A DNA stretch of 64,000 nucleotides from Podarcis filfolensis (taxonomy: Eukaryota): the NCBI GenBank assembly GCA_964270895.1, contig OZ185436.1; one strand, written 5' to 3'. Made by a program: the position numbers and the translations under genes. The notes beneath the pieces were generated by a model that saw only the letters and a program-made list of their open reading frames with translations, was not told where the DNA came from and did not search any database. This document shows, in pieces, positions 2,889 to 10,075 of the stretch. The stretch's first letter is position 1, and each line of letters starts with the position of its first letter.

Positions 2889-3085
2889 CTGATAGCACAT
2901 TCGACAGTGGGCAGGGATCAACCGTGTATTCAGACTCCCAGAGCAGCCAGCAAAGTGTCATCTACTCATCTATGCCTGATGCAATACCTCCTGCAATTCA
3001 GCGGGTTTATAGCCCACCTCTCAGCGAAAGCCAGACTTTGCCCCATGGTCTTCAGCAGCTGGGACCCTACCAGCAGCCTTCAGTT
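2889..3085 (+). CDS. WNK2: WNK2 internal coding exon (DSTFDSGQGSTVYSDSQSSQQSV...YQQPSV), phase 1 in, phase 0 out
   Basis: Acceptor tccttcag| at 2888 and donor |gtaagc at 3086. The translation matches the remembered human WNK2 segment DSTFDSGQGSTVYSDSQSSQQSV, homologous to WNK1 exon 8. Confidence 0.95.
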
Positions 3086-3427
3086 GTAAGCATAACGGTT
3101 TCCTTAAAATACTTTGTATTTATGGATCTCCACATATAACCTTTAAGAACAAATTCTTTTTCAGATTCTAGACTCTGAGTCCAGTTTCCCCACATAAATA
3201 TATGAAGCTCCCCCATATATATGAATTGGTGCCATAAAAACACATATGCTTATCTACTCAGTATGTATGTTTGCTTTAGCTAGTGTACTCTAACAAACTA
3301 ACCAGGTGCAATACATTTAATTCAACCCAAATGTGTTTATTAGTTTAACTGTAACCAAATTAGAACCCCTAAACGTTATCGTTTGAAGCATTCTCTCATT
3401 TGTTGTGTTTTCTCGCTGTCTCTATAG

Positions 3428-4444
3428 CCACATATTATTGTTCCTTCATTTTCTCAAGAATCTTTCGGGTCAGATATTTCTTCCAGCTGTTCTAAAGGTC
3501 AGGCATCTGTTCAGTACCTGTGTAGCTCTTTCATTGGACTGAATATTTCAGAGAGGCGAAGAAGCACTTCTGTTGTAGAAGCTCCTAAATCTAACAACCA
3601 GTACCTAGGAAGTCATTCACACTTGCTCTCATGCTCCTGTTTCAACAACCAGCAAAAATTAATGGAACTGTTACTGCAAGAAGAGCAGCGAGAAGCCGAA
3701 CACGAACCTTCAGTCTTATTCAATGACAAAGCTGGCACGTGCCTTGTGTGCTCCTCCTCAGAGACCCCTGGGACACAGTGCTTCTGTACTCGACAGTATT
3801 TGCTACCTGCGTTGCACAGCAGTTCCTTCAGCTGCCGTCGCCATAGTGATTCAGTGGTGGCTTTGACACCAAATGCGATGCCTCTCACAGCAGAACTGCT
3901 GGGATCAAGCCTAAAGCCATTGCAGGAGAAGGAAAATGAAACCAGTGAATCACAGCTACCGGGATTCTGGAAGTCTTCAAATTCTGCCGAGTTTATGCTC
4001 ATTAAACCAACCTGCCACGAGTGCTTGGCTCATCTGCTGCATTCTGGAGCAGATCTGAACAAAACTGAATTATTAATGCCTCTTAAATGTGCTATACACA
4101 TTCCTTCCGTCCTCTGCAATAGTCTAAAAACCAGCTCTGCATCTCAACCACATCATGAAACTAGTAAGCTTTATGGCAAAAGTTTAGACCTGTCTTTATT
4201 AAATGAACCTGTGCAGCATCTAATTAACCCACAAAACAGCTCTGCCTCAGTAAAAACAGCAAGCACGCCTACGAAAGCCCCATGTTCAGAATTTATTTCT
4301 GAACAAGCCAGCAAGGCAGAATGTTGCCAGTGTTGCCACAAGCTTGGTCCAGATCAGACTTCAGTGATGCAGAATGACTACCTGACTCAAGGCCTACCAA
4401 ACATTGGGAGCAGCCTAGCTTGTAAAAAAGATGCCAGAGCTGTG
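3428..4444 (+). CDS. WNK2: Putative 1017-nt HSN2-like cassette exon of WNK2 (PHIIVPSFSQ...ISERRRSTSVVEA...KDARAV), phase 0-0
   Basis: Pyrimidine tract plus tctatag| acceptor at 3427. The frame is open from 3428 into the listed ORF 3623..4477. The donor GTG|GTAGGT at 4445 is in phase 0. Length is 339 codons, in frame with both flanking exons. Confidence 0.75.
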
Positions 4445-7400
4445 GTAGGTGGAATGCCTCATTGCTTCCTCGCTTGACTTAGAAGACTGAACAATTCCAA
4501 GAATGATACTGAATGCATCCTGTTTGACCCGGAATGACTTTCAATCAATTAGAAAAGCCATGCTTGCCCTACTTTTCCCTTTTCTCTCTCCAAAATGCCT
4601 GTAATAAAACCTAAGGTGTACTTAGTTTGTATGGTCCCATGAATTCCATGACAGCATCGCTTTCTTAACCCGGGGGAGGGGAATAGCTTTGGTGATTGTA
4701 CCAGCCTTCCTTTGTTGTTGCAATGGTTCCTCAGATAAATGTACTACCTACCTTGCAAGTTTTAATCTTATCTTGCTGCTTTATTATATAAAGCAAAAGG
4801 CCTGCAACTTTGTGCAATTGCAAAATTCAACAATGTAGCTGGGTGCCTCAGTGCCCACCCAACATTTGATTTTCAGTTGTGAAGTATGGATGTGACACTC
4901 CTGATAGCTTTAAAAAGTAAAATATTTTAACTTGACATTTGTGAGAAACATTGGTTATTGCTTTTTTATCTAAATGAAAACTCTTAAAGTAAAATACTTT
5001 TTCATACAGATGCACTTTGCTTAATTTTAGTCATCACAACAATAATTTATATTTGATCATTTATGTTTCATTTTTTTTCCTTCAACACTGTTTACATCAG
5101 AGTAAGACTTCAAGTAGATGACATTATGTTTTAATGAGGTCTTTTTGACATACAACATATTCCTATTAATCACTTACAAAGAAAACTGCTAGAAGTCATC
5201 CTTTGTAATATGGCTTTTAACACATCAAGTTTTCATTCAGCATCCAGCCACATACATTCTGATGTTTTGTATAGGGTTCCTGCCTTTCTGTAAAAAAAAA
5301 AAATAATGCTTTTTTTTTTTAACAAGCCATTATTTGTTTTTGGCTAGCCATTTTTATTTCTGCAAAAAAGCTGCTCTTTATCGACTCGTGGACTACCTAG
5401 TGCTAACATGGCTGTTTTTTATTCATTCATAAAAATATAAAGCAACTCACATACGTAGTAACTTCTCCCTTTCCTAATGTGTTACAGCATGCTTTTAATT
5501 GCAAACCCCCTCCTCCCCCAAAGTTTATCAGCTGTTTTTAATCACTTGCCTGCCTTTCATGAAAATTTAAAGTGTACTTTATGTGTTTCAATTCTCTTTT
5601 CTTTAAAGTCATTTTTGTATATGCATTTTTCATGGTTGCATAAGCTGTTCAGGTAGTGGAGTCTAGTGAATAAACAAGACTTCTCTAAGGCATTAGTGCC
5701 CAAGCGCTGAAGTTACAGTCGGGGTAGGAAATATGCTGTGGGCAGGCATCAGCTTATGGGGCTATTCATTTATTACTTTTCAGTGCCCTGGAGAGAATGA
5801 ATGGAATGATTTCCCCTCACCACAACCAGTCCACGCTCTGCCATACATTTTGGAAATAGTGAAAATGTTCTCAGAAAGGGTTGAGTCTTTGACACCTCTC
5901 CTTTTAAAAACTAAACATTCTGCAATCTGACTGGTGCATGGATGCCCTAGTGTGCCTGCTCTCTGCTTTATCACCACCTCCCCCGCCTTCCCATAACATC
6001 TTAGAGTCCAACTAGATGGGATGCTCCAGCATTTCCTTTAAAAAACAAAAATCACTACCCACAAAAGGAAGATGGTTGAAAAGTAGGCTGTATGTTTAGA
6101 CTTCATATTAGCTTCTGCAGGGAGGGGAAATTTGGCATACGTGAAGTTAATCTCCCTTACCCCTGTAACTGGTCCTGCTCAAATTGCATACACACACACA
6201 TACTCCTTGCTTGCTTTTGTTGGTTTAAGGAAGGCTGTGTACACACTCCCATTTATAGTGCATCCACTTCTGGTTTGAGAAGCAGTTAGCCACAATCCAT
6301 ATCTATCCTGTCATTTATTCTGAAACACTGTGTTCTGATGCATTTCAACCCCAAAACCAGTCTGAATTGAAAATAAGTATGAGCTTTTCTGTGTTTTAAG
6401 CCAGTAATATGTAAACAGTCAAAAGGTCAGGAGATCCAATGGCAAATCTCCTGTCCCCCATCTGGTTTGACTCATTCTGACAATCCCAAGAAATAAATGG
6501 TCACTACTGCACTGTAAATACATTATTTACCTTCATGTGGAACTGCTAGGAACTGTTGGTGGTGACTTGGAGATTCAGTGCAGGTCAACATGCCTCAGTT
6601 TCCTCTCCACTCTCTTTCCCCCTACCCTTCAATCCCCCTACCATTTCTCAGTACCATAATCATGCTTTCAGGGTTTTCCCACACCTGTCATCTGAGTCAT
6701 AGGGAAAAGGGAAGTATAGGCATCACACAATATGCTTGGGTTTTACAACCTTGCTTTTATTGCTAGTTGCTTTAGTGTGGATATTTGTTTGTTTGAATGT
6801 TCATATTTTAATATACTTCTCTTGTGAGCCATAATGGGCTAAAAGGCAGATTGCATCAGTTGTAAAATAAATAAATAAGGTCTCATCCCACTCTTGCCTT
6901 GTCTCACAGGCATAAGATAATTGCCTGCGTTTAGTGCTAATTGCTCGAGTAGCAAGTTTGCATGCTTTGGTGGAAACAGTGGACACCATGACACCAGCCA
7001 GCTTGGGCATTGTAAAGGCAGAGAACAGTGTAAATGAAGGCTGTAAAAAACAGAAAGCCATCTGTGACTTTCTGCTCCAATGCTCATACTTATTAAAGAT
7101 TTTTTTTAGAAAAAGAGAAAGAAAGAAATCTCCTTGCCCACTTACAAGGGAAGCACGGAGGTCTCCAGTAAACATTTACTGCACCTGCAGGTTATGTTCT
7201 TAGCATGTATGCATACACCATTATTGTTTCTTGTGGACACATTTTGAGTATACTGTATTCAAGGTATTCATAGGATCACAGCACTGGAATTGAGGTTCCA
7301 GCAGCTTCGTTCCATCCTTTCAGCCATAACTCCTGTGTCGTCTTTTTTGTATTTTCTACCAAGTATGGATTACAAAACTTGGTGTTGAGTTTTGTCGTCT

Positions 7401-7568: not shown

Positions 7569-7721
7569 CCTGGACTTCCAGTGGTTCAGGCTCCACCTGC
7601 TGTTGTCTCTCAGCGACCACAACATTATCAAGAACCAGCAATCCCATTTCCTCTCGTCCATCCCACCTCCGTTGCCCCTGTCCAGATGAGACAATCACAG
7701 CCTGTGTTAGCCAGCCAGCAG
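7569..7721 (+). CDS. WNK2: WNK2 coding exon (PGLPVVQAPP...PVLASQQ), 153 nt, phase 0-0
   Basis: cccttcag| acceptor and |gtaagt donor. Resembles human PGLPVGSVP...PPGQQ. Not in the ORF track. Confidence 0.92.
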
Positions 7722-9495: not shown

Positions 9496-10075
9496 ACCTG
9501 GATAGCTCAGTTGGTTAGAGTGTGGGATGCCTGATTATCGTCTTCCAAAGCAACTACTCTATTCTGAACTTAAAAATGGAAAGTGTAATTCTGGTGGTCA
9601 ACAAAAGAGGTTTAAAGACTGTCTCAAGGCAAATCTAAAAAAAAGTAGTATAAACACCGACAACTGGGAAACCCTGGCTGCGAGCGCTCCAGTTGGAGAA
9701 CAGCCTTTACCAAAGGTGTCATGGGCTTTGAAGACACTCAAACGCAGAACGCAAGGGAGAAACATGCTAGGAGGAAGGCACGCTTGGCAAATCCACATCG
9801 TGATCAACCCCCGCCCAGGAACCAATGTCCCCACTGTGGAAGGACGTGTGGGTCCAGAATTGGCCTCCACAGTCACTTACGGACTCATTGTTAAAACCAT
9901 GTTTACGGAAGACAATCTTACTCGGCTACAAGTGATCGCCAAAGAAGAAGGAGGTGCTGATAATGCCAAGGTTGCAATTTTGATCCCCATATGGGACAGC
10001 TGCATATTCCTGCCTTGCAGGGGGTTGGACTAGATGATCCTCAAGCTCCTTTCCAACTCTACAAGTCTATGATCT
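9496..10075 (+). mobile_element. tRNA-headed SINE with CR1-like 3' tail, split by the RTE insertion (9496-9525 and ~9954-10075)
   Basis: The A-box head ggatagctcagttggttagagtgtgg continues after the RTE as tgctgataatgccaaggttgca...tgatcccc and ends ccaactctacaagtctatgatct. Confidence 0.8.
9526..9953 (+). mobile_element. 5'-truncated RTE-clade LINE 3' end with C-terminal C2H2 zinc finger, frameshifted
   Basis: MPDYRLPKQLLYSELKNGK..GGQQKRFKDCLK is typical of the RTE ORF C-terminus. A second frame gives CPHCGRTCGSRIGLHSHLRTHC* (9826-9894). Short GAA tail. Confidence 0.88.

Follow-up and report, generated by a model that had tools for sequence, protein, structure and literature searches.

The WNK2 locus and anatomy of the cassette exon

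The stretch of 64 000 nt of Podarcis filfolensis DNA analysed here (contig OZ185436.1 of assembly GCA_964270895.1; hereafter called the window) harbours a large stop-free block bounded by splice sites between two exons of a WNK gene (Table 1). The initial annotation regarded this block as a coding exon of WNK2, and the upstream flanking exon supports this assignment, i.e. it shows 86 % identity to passerine WNK2 and 60–69 % to mammalian WNK2, the identity to residues 653–680 of Mastomys WNK1 being 61 % over 28 aa only. Since further ORFs of the window also match the C-terminus of sturgeon and gar WNK2, the gene hosting the cassette is, as judged by these similarities, WNK2.

The open frame, the acceptor, the donor and the phases that had been proposed for the block were all borne out by the window sequence. 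The AG of the acceptor occupies positions 3426–3427, 3′ of a pyrimidine-rich tract, and the frame stays open past the donor, up to position 4474. The upstream exon terminates with a full codon (..QQPSV/gtaagc, the slash marking the exon boundary, here and below), and the first codon of the downstream exon is likewise complete (cag/CCT GGA.., encoding PGLP..). As the upstream exon ends and the downstream exon begins on complete codons, the cassette is of phase 0/0, and its inclusion or skipping therefore leaves the WNK2 frame unchanged. The motif ISERRRSTSVVEA was found where it had been placed before, namely at residues 40–52 of the encoded peptide (nt 3545–3583).

Table 1. Position of the WNK2 cassette exon, its splice sites, its flanking exons and its conserved peptide islands in the window
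Feature	Position	Strand	Characteristics
Upstream constitutive WNK2 exon	2889–3085	+	Homologue of WNK1 exon 8; enters in phase 1, leaves in phase 0
Polypyrimidine tract and AG acceptor of the cassette	3398–3427	+	Pyrimidine-rich, ...ttttctcgctgtctctatag
Cassette exon	3428–4444	+	1017 nt, 339 codons, 0 stops, phase 0/0
N-terminal island IIVPSFSQE	3434–3460	+	Consensus VPxIVQEP; P6 invariant
Core motif ISERRRSTSVVEAPKS	3545–3592	+	Consensus RR-x-S-[TA]-S-[LV]-[IV]-E; R43, R44, S46, S48; putative basophilic-kinase phosphosite or docking motif
Second RRxS island CRRHSDSVVA	3833–3862	+	H139, D141 and S142 invariant in 12 sequences
CxxC-L-x-x-LL island CHECLAHLL	4013–4039	+	C196, C199, L203, L204; predicted short helix
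Island D-L-x-L-L-x-x-x-L-x-x-I-I-x-x-K/R, LDLSLLNEPVQHLINPQNSS	4184–4243	+	D254, L255, L258, L262, I265
Cassette donor GTAGGT	4445–4450	+	Context GTG/GTAGGT
Downstream WNK2 exon	7569–7721	+	Starts in phase 0; corresponds to residues 814–865 of the sturgeon protein P0027, directly after its cassette

The next intron contains an open frame of 525 nt (9506–10030, plus strand; ..RLPKQLLYSELKNGK..GGQQKRFKDCLKANLKK..) resembling the C-terminal end of LINE ORF2 proteins, for which a Pfam scan returned no match. Repeats at ~32.8 kb, ~47.0 kb, ~62.0 kb and ~58.2 kb of the window comprise (GT/CA)n microsatellites, which read CVCVCV or THTHTH in translation, and a trinucleotide repeat read as 14 consecutive Asn codons.

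The cassette in WNK2 of ray-finned fishes

The peptide of 339 aa was searched exhaustively against 1.84 billion representative proteins with phmmer, which yielded nine matches and no mammal-like ORF. All nine are ORFs predicted from short contigs of genomic DNA (Logan), and several of them end in ..DVVG, reflecting translation through the cassette donor. One of the matching clusters also includes a GenBank protein of 1967 aa from Acipenser sinensis (MGH0148868.1), in which the cassette forms residues 486–813 and is spliced between homologues of both flanking exons. A search with this sturgeon region recovered the cassette in RefSeq WNK2 isoforms of spotted gar and bowfin, and the GenBank models of alligator gar and Amia calva likewise contain it. 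By BLASTP, the lizard cassette matched over ~290 aa with E values of 4e-19 (gar), 3e-18 (sturgeon) and 2e-12 (bowfin); in the gar protein P0028 it aligned colinearly to residues 657–921, and its flanks to residues 614–651 and 982–1033. A profile of the cassette also matched WNK2 of tarpon and bonefish and, in diverged form, of tuna and cardinalfish.

The window and the fish genes agree in the position of the cassette, i.e. between the exon 8 homologue (..GSTVYSDSQSSQQSV..YQQP..) and a Q-rich exon starting with PG or PS, in colinear similarity over most of the exon, and in the islands RRxS[TA]S, RRHSDS, CxxCLxxLL and DLxLLxxxLxxII. On this comparative evidence, the window exon is orthologous to the annotated WNK2 cassette of fishes. 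Survival of the exon, which the initial annotation noted for squamate WNK2, is accordingly no squamate peculiarity, given its presence in WNK2 of many ray-finned fishes and in other reptile-like contigs.

In bowfin, isoforms X1 (..YQQPPA/HNSSGPS..) and X3 (..YQQPPA/PSFAMAP..) differ solely at the cassette junction, and the gar isoforms X3 and X2 differ by exactly the cassette as well. Therefore, the cassette is alternative in fish gene models and already annotated there. This settles for ray-finned fishes, whose automated models include the exon, the question of its annotation, which had been left undecided; word-indexed searches for annotated tetrapod isoforms with the exon led to fishes alone, and in a mixed, non-exhaustive sample of WNK proteins collected by a kinase-domain search, it occurred in no tetrapod WNK2 model. 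The cassette is absent from two full-length WNK2 ORFs (Logan P0141 and P0143; 2098 and 2110 aa). Since their contigs of 7.4–8.0 kb barely exceed the ORF length, both are probably assembled transcripts of fishes, which would agree with the exon being skipped in some tissues at least.

The GenBank model of alligator gar (P0029, ~913–951) reads past the cassette donor for 39 in-frame residues (..RLSIM/VGNSKQMSL..FCLFTCSLNSSKIRKKQNEH..IIFQ), and the end of this stretch recurs in a UniProt model of spotted gar (P0033). It therefore seems that gars possess a very short in-frame intron (about 117 nt) 3′ of the cassette, which was retained in the gene models.

Retention, loss and selection in sauropsids

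Logan contigs were labelled squamate-like, bird-like or reptile-like as inferred from WNK2 protein similarity and a DNA tree. The cassette is intact in contigs L005, L009 and L006 (1014, 1014 and 1020 nt, respectively), which are free of stops and share the AG/CCA acceptor and the GTG/GTAGGT donor with the window. Among the bird-like contigs, L001 carries two in-frame TGA codons and a cassette whose length is not a multiple of three, and in L002–L004, L007/L008 and L010/L011 frameshifts are found and the RR motif is degraded to RW or SW. L012, which groups with the window, has lost the AG, contains several frameshifts and sits on a long branch. In all, a decayed cassette was seen in four bird-like contigs and L012. 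The passerine Motacilla alba (L013, GCA_013397355.1) has a gap-free intron of 567 nt between the flanks, with no trace of the cassette, and the flanks are joined directly in the sampled passerine WNK2 proteins. In the upstream exon, the bird-like contigs show 92–94 % identity to passerine WNK2. Direct joining of the flanking exons was also observed in three non-human mammalian WNK2 models. The acceptor region ..yag/CCAyAyrTT is conserved in L005, L009, L006, L001, L002 and L010, and the donor GTG/GTAGGT is identical in L005, L009, L006, L001 and L002.

In one of the Logan ORFs (P0011, L001:1483–2787; 434 aa), TGA had been translated as Trp, despite the two in-frame TGA codons, and the locus is flagged as not translating to the query. 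Therefore, Logan ORFs can mask stops, and intactness needs to be checked at the DNA level.

Comparing the window with its nearest relative, L005, the cassette DNA is 77 % identical with 15 gapped positions (61 % at the amino acid level), the flanking intron 60–64 % with 49–64 gapped positions, and the upstream exon 92 %. Among the four intact sequences (window, L005, L009 and L006), dN/dS ranged from 0.38 to 0.58, and none of 1000 bootstrap replicates reached 1 for the pairs window–L005, window–L009 and L009–L006. These patterns indicate moderate purifying selection on the cassette wherever it survives and at least two losses, with decay or deletion in birds. Considering its fast evolution and the several losses, the constraint is modest.

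The encoded peptide

An alignment of 12 cassettes, comprising reptile-like contigs and fishes, shows a mean column identity of 39 %, with conservation clustering in five islands (Table 1), of which the core island reads RR-x-S-[TA]-S-[LV]-[IV]-E-A-P-K in its longer form. Columns that are invariant or nearly so are P6, C21, R43, R44, S46, S48, H139, D141, S142, C196, C199, L203, L204, D254, L255 and L258. Pfam recognised no family in the cassette of the lizard, of gar or of sturgeon, and a feature search of the ESM Atlas retrieved only low-scoring generic disordered proteins of chordates (best score 0.68). AlphaFold2, run with the 12-sequence alignment, predicted only two short helices (residues 76–85 and 197–207) at a mean pLDDT of 41 and a pTM of 0.15; in view of these low scores, the peptide is read as disordered. 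The most economical reading of these predictions is that the insert would be a disordered, isoform-specific carrier of short linear motifs. The RRxS pattern is a consensus for basophilic kinases, e.g. PKA and SGK, and we infer phosphorylation or phospho-dependent docking at the two RRxS islands.

The peptide consists of 16 % Ser and 5.6 % Cys. Of its 19 Cys among 339 residues, C21, C196 and C199, and with the latter two the CxxC motif, are invariant from fishes to reptiles, and C71 nearly so. A disordered insert in the cytosol would not usually be so rich in Cys, which might serve zinc binding, palmitoylation or redox sensing.

Relationship to the HSN2 exon of WNK1

HSN2 is a cassette of WNK1 that is enriched in the nervous system and mutated in HSAN2A, a pain neuropathy. 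It sits in intron 8 of WNK1, between exons 8 and 9 (PMC3365125, PMC3536653), and one paper notes the lack of any reported motif (PMC3536653). The region encoded by HSN2 binds KIF1A and is needed for the function of sensory neurons (PMC3933052, citing Riviere et al. 2011).

The kinase-domain search provided HSN2 carriers for comparison, i.e. Mastomys WNK1 X13, Dipodomys WNK1, three pipefish WNK1 isoforms and a turbot protein. The Mastomys WNK1 isoforms X1 and X13 are equal through ..GVYPPSSM, whereupon X13 has an additional 499 residues (exon 8b and HSN2) before ..AQGQNQ... The residues just ahead of this insertion align to window positions 2889–3085, so that the intron after the exon 8 homologue houses both inserts, the cassette in WNK2 and 8b plus HSN2 in WNK1. 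The Mastomys isoforms and the published gene structure (PMC3365125) thereby agree with the initial annotation, which had placed HSN2 directly after the homologue of this exon. The junction residues of the WNK1 isoforms are unchanged by HSN2 inclusion, which, as far as can be told from proteins, is consistent with phase 0.

The HSN2 motif given in the initial annotation, ISQRRKSTSFLEA, occurs verbatim in the HSN2-bearing WNK1 isoforms of rodents. Its counterpart in fishes is QRRKSTSILEA, and the motif forms the longest invariant block of HSN2. It begins 40–42 residues from the presumed start of rodent HSN2 (..(PQ)SMAHP..), as compared with an offset of 39 residues in the window. The core common to both exons is RR-x-S-T-S-x-x-E-A, and within I-S-x-R-R-x-S-T-S-x-x-E-A the WNK2 cassette and HSN2 are identical at 9 of 13 positions. 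Among 267 proteins, a set that also covers WNK1 isoforms without HSN2, WNK3 and WNK4, the regular expression RR.STS..[ED]A matches WNK2 cassettes and HSN2 only.

In profile comparisons by hhalign, lizard residues 27–54 aligned to Mastomys HSN2 residues 28–55 (P=3.9e-4, probability 36 %, 28 columns), and the 12-sequence alignment gave a similar result (P=8.4e-4, probability 24 %, 26 columns). Column shuffles of the HSN2 alignment scored 13.4 ± 2.3 (maximum 24.5), none of 300 reaching the observed 37.6, which lies about 10 sd above them; the reversed alignment scored 16.1. Outside the 26–28 aligned columns, hhalign detected no similarity to HSN2; phmmer with the 339 aa found no HSN2-bearing protein, and phmmer and hmmsearch gave nothing significant outside the motif. 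A permissive hhalign run paired VPSIVQEP with FFPSIxERP (FFP[ST]IxERP) ahead of the motif, at no confidence, and this pairing was discounted as evidence. Rodent and pipefish HSN2 are 34 % identical over 362 aa (E 1e-22), i.e. each of the two cassette families can be aligned with its own orthologues from fishes to tetrapods despite the lack of alignment between the families elsewhere. The proposed homology with HSN2 is partly supported, by the junction, the motif and its offset, and falls short in that no alignment extends past 26–28 columns.

The exon 8b region of Mastomys WNK1 (P0227, residues 715–802) contains RRxS-type sites, too (PRRGRSMS and KHRRSSLPS). Therefore, both neural cassettes of WNK1 and the WNK2 cassette are rich in consensus sites for basophilic kinases. 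Within 300–500 nt around the WNK2 cassette, no conserved Rbfox-type (U)GCAUG sites were found, and YCAY counts were unremarkable.

Alternative explanations

It is extremely unlikely that the block is open by chance, derives from a transposon or forms a single-exon gene of its own within the intron. Its open frame ranks second in length within the window. When the 64 kb were shuffled 200 times with dinucleotides preserved, the longest open frame measured 469 nt on average and 747 nt at most, with none reaching 1047 nt; chance is therefore excluded for the open frame. A transposon remnant is at odds with the absence of any Pfam or transposable element signature from the block. A nested gene is brought to mind by an ORF of 129 aa on the minus strand (3613–4002) and by HSN2 itself, which was initially reported as a nested single-exon gene (PMC3536653). 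However, the 5′ end of the block has no start codon, the first being a TTG at 3623, its conservation is bounded exactly by the AG and the GT, and the cassette is spliced into WNK2 in fish gene models; together with the shuffles, these observations led us to reject both the chance-ORF and the nested-gene reading. Somewhat less remote, yet still quite improbable, is a recent silencing in Podarcis filfolensis, in which ORF and splice sites would be intact and the exon no longer spliced in, as may also have happened en route to the loss in birds. The repeated independent decay, including that of L012, which groups with the window, would fit such a course of events. However, the frame of 339 codons is intact and differs from L005, L009 and L006 by in-frame indels only, dN/dS is 0.43 at a dS of 0.51, both splice sites fit the consensus, and the decayed copies illustrate that neutrality leads to stops and frameshifts at comparable divergence.

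The block being read, then, as an optional exon of WNK2, the remaining alternative concerns its relation to HSN2. The exon could be orthologous to the fish cassette and yet not be a homologue of HSN2, the two having arisen independently and converged on an RRxSTS-type phosphosite. We consider this possible, if rather unlikely. RRxS sites are frequent in disordered regions, the alignable columns are few and of low HH probability (24–36 %), and the other ~300 residues are dissimilar, even though each cassette aligns among its own orthologues. Convergence would nevertheless have to account for the identical junction in paralogous genes, for the near-identical distance from the exon start, and for a shared core that is longer than RRxS, is the best-conserved block in both exons, is unique to them among the WNK proteins compared and scores far above column shuffles. 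Because junction, offset and core motif coincide in two paralogues, we prefer common descent, and the WNK2 cassette and WNK1 HSN2 are probably paralogous exons. As the similarity is limited to 26–28 columns, common descent is likely, not proven.

Functional and evolutionary implications

The exon has the complete anatomy of an optional coding exon, is subject to purifying selection, has orthologues in fishes, is used alternatively in fish gene models and was lost in birds. We are fairly confident in the reading as a whole, i.e. that window positions 3428–4444 represent a genuine optional coding exon of WNK2 which is older than the split between ray-finned fishes and tetrapods. Its inclusion would add 339 residues in frame, C-terminal to the kinase and first CCT-like domains of WNK2 and between the segment encoded by the exon 8 homologue and the Pro/Gln-rich region. 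Five short islands within the insert, which is predicted to be disordered, have been conserved for >400 My, and the insert may act as an isoform-specific regulatory or docking module, with the two RRxS islands as candidate sites for basophilic kinases or phospho-dependent binding. By analogy with HSN2 in WNK1, exon inclusion could switch function and might be biased towards the nervous system.

It is tempting to go one step further and derive both cassettes from a single exon predating the vertebrate WNK1/WNK2 duplication, with the phospho-motif as the sole deeply constrained element and the module being kept, partitioned or lost between the paralogues; the case for and against this scenario appears to us evenly balanced. 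If this single origin is true, (I/L)(S/A)xRRxS(T/A)S(hydrophobic)(hydrophobic)E(A) would be the functional core of HSN2, and fishes and non-avian reptiles would keep both cassettes, birds and possibly mammals the WNK1 copy only. RR-x-STS-xx-EA can be put to the test as the putative functional core of the two inserts, either as a phosphosite or as a docking site.

WNK2 is a brain-enriched regulator of NKCC1 and KCC2 (PMC3191056). Fishes and reptiles would possess an unstudied long isoform of this protein, discarded by birds and maybe by mammals, and the pattern of retention and loss may serve as a natural experiment in the partitioning of a module between paralogues. For annotation purposes, squamate WNK2 models should include the cassette exon. 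In the literature, which was covered incompletely, we found no mention of a WNK2 counterpart of HSN2. The cassette is known insofar as it is part of annotated WNK2 of ray-finned fishes; the literature that could be searched contains no description of it as an HSN2 counterpart.

Comparison with the fish WNK2 cassette and WNK1 HSN2

The fish WNK2 cassette is carried by Lepisosteus oculatus X3, Amia ocellicauda X1/X2 and Megalops cyprinoides WNK2-like X2, as well as by Albula goreensis, Acipenser sinensis MGH0148868.1 and Thunnus thynnus X2. It resembles the window exon in its junction, in the five islands and in the donor context (V or M followed by VG), at a size of about 310–330 aa. In contrast, its identity to the lizard-like sequence is just 18–27 %, and in teleost cassettes the residues linking the N-terminal island to the RRGS motif have been lost, RRGSASL taking the place of RRxSTS.

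As to HSN2, several features set it apart from the WNK2 cassette. WNK1 has the extra exon 8b 5′ of HSN2, HSN2 is devoid of the RRHSDS, CxxC and DLSLLH islands, and the WNK2 cassette in turn lacks the HSN2 blocks LQPVTEE and (E/D)FQSPPP. HSN2 has been kept in mammals, whereas none of the three mammalian WNK2 models compared contains the WNK2 cassette, and KIF1A binding and a link to disease are known for HSN2 only (PMC3933052). On the other hand, HSN2 is likewise a large in-frame insert (about 0.4 kaa) predicted or reported to be without domains, and its best-conserved block, (I)(S)QRRKSTS(F/I)LEA, lies at an offset from the exon start that nearly matches that of the window.
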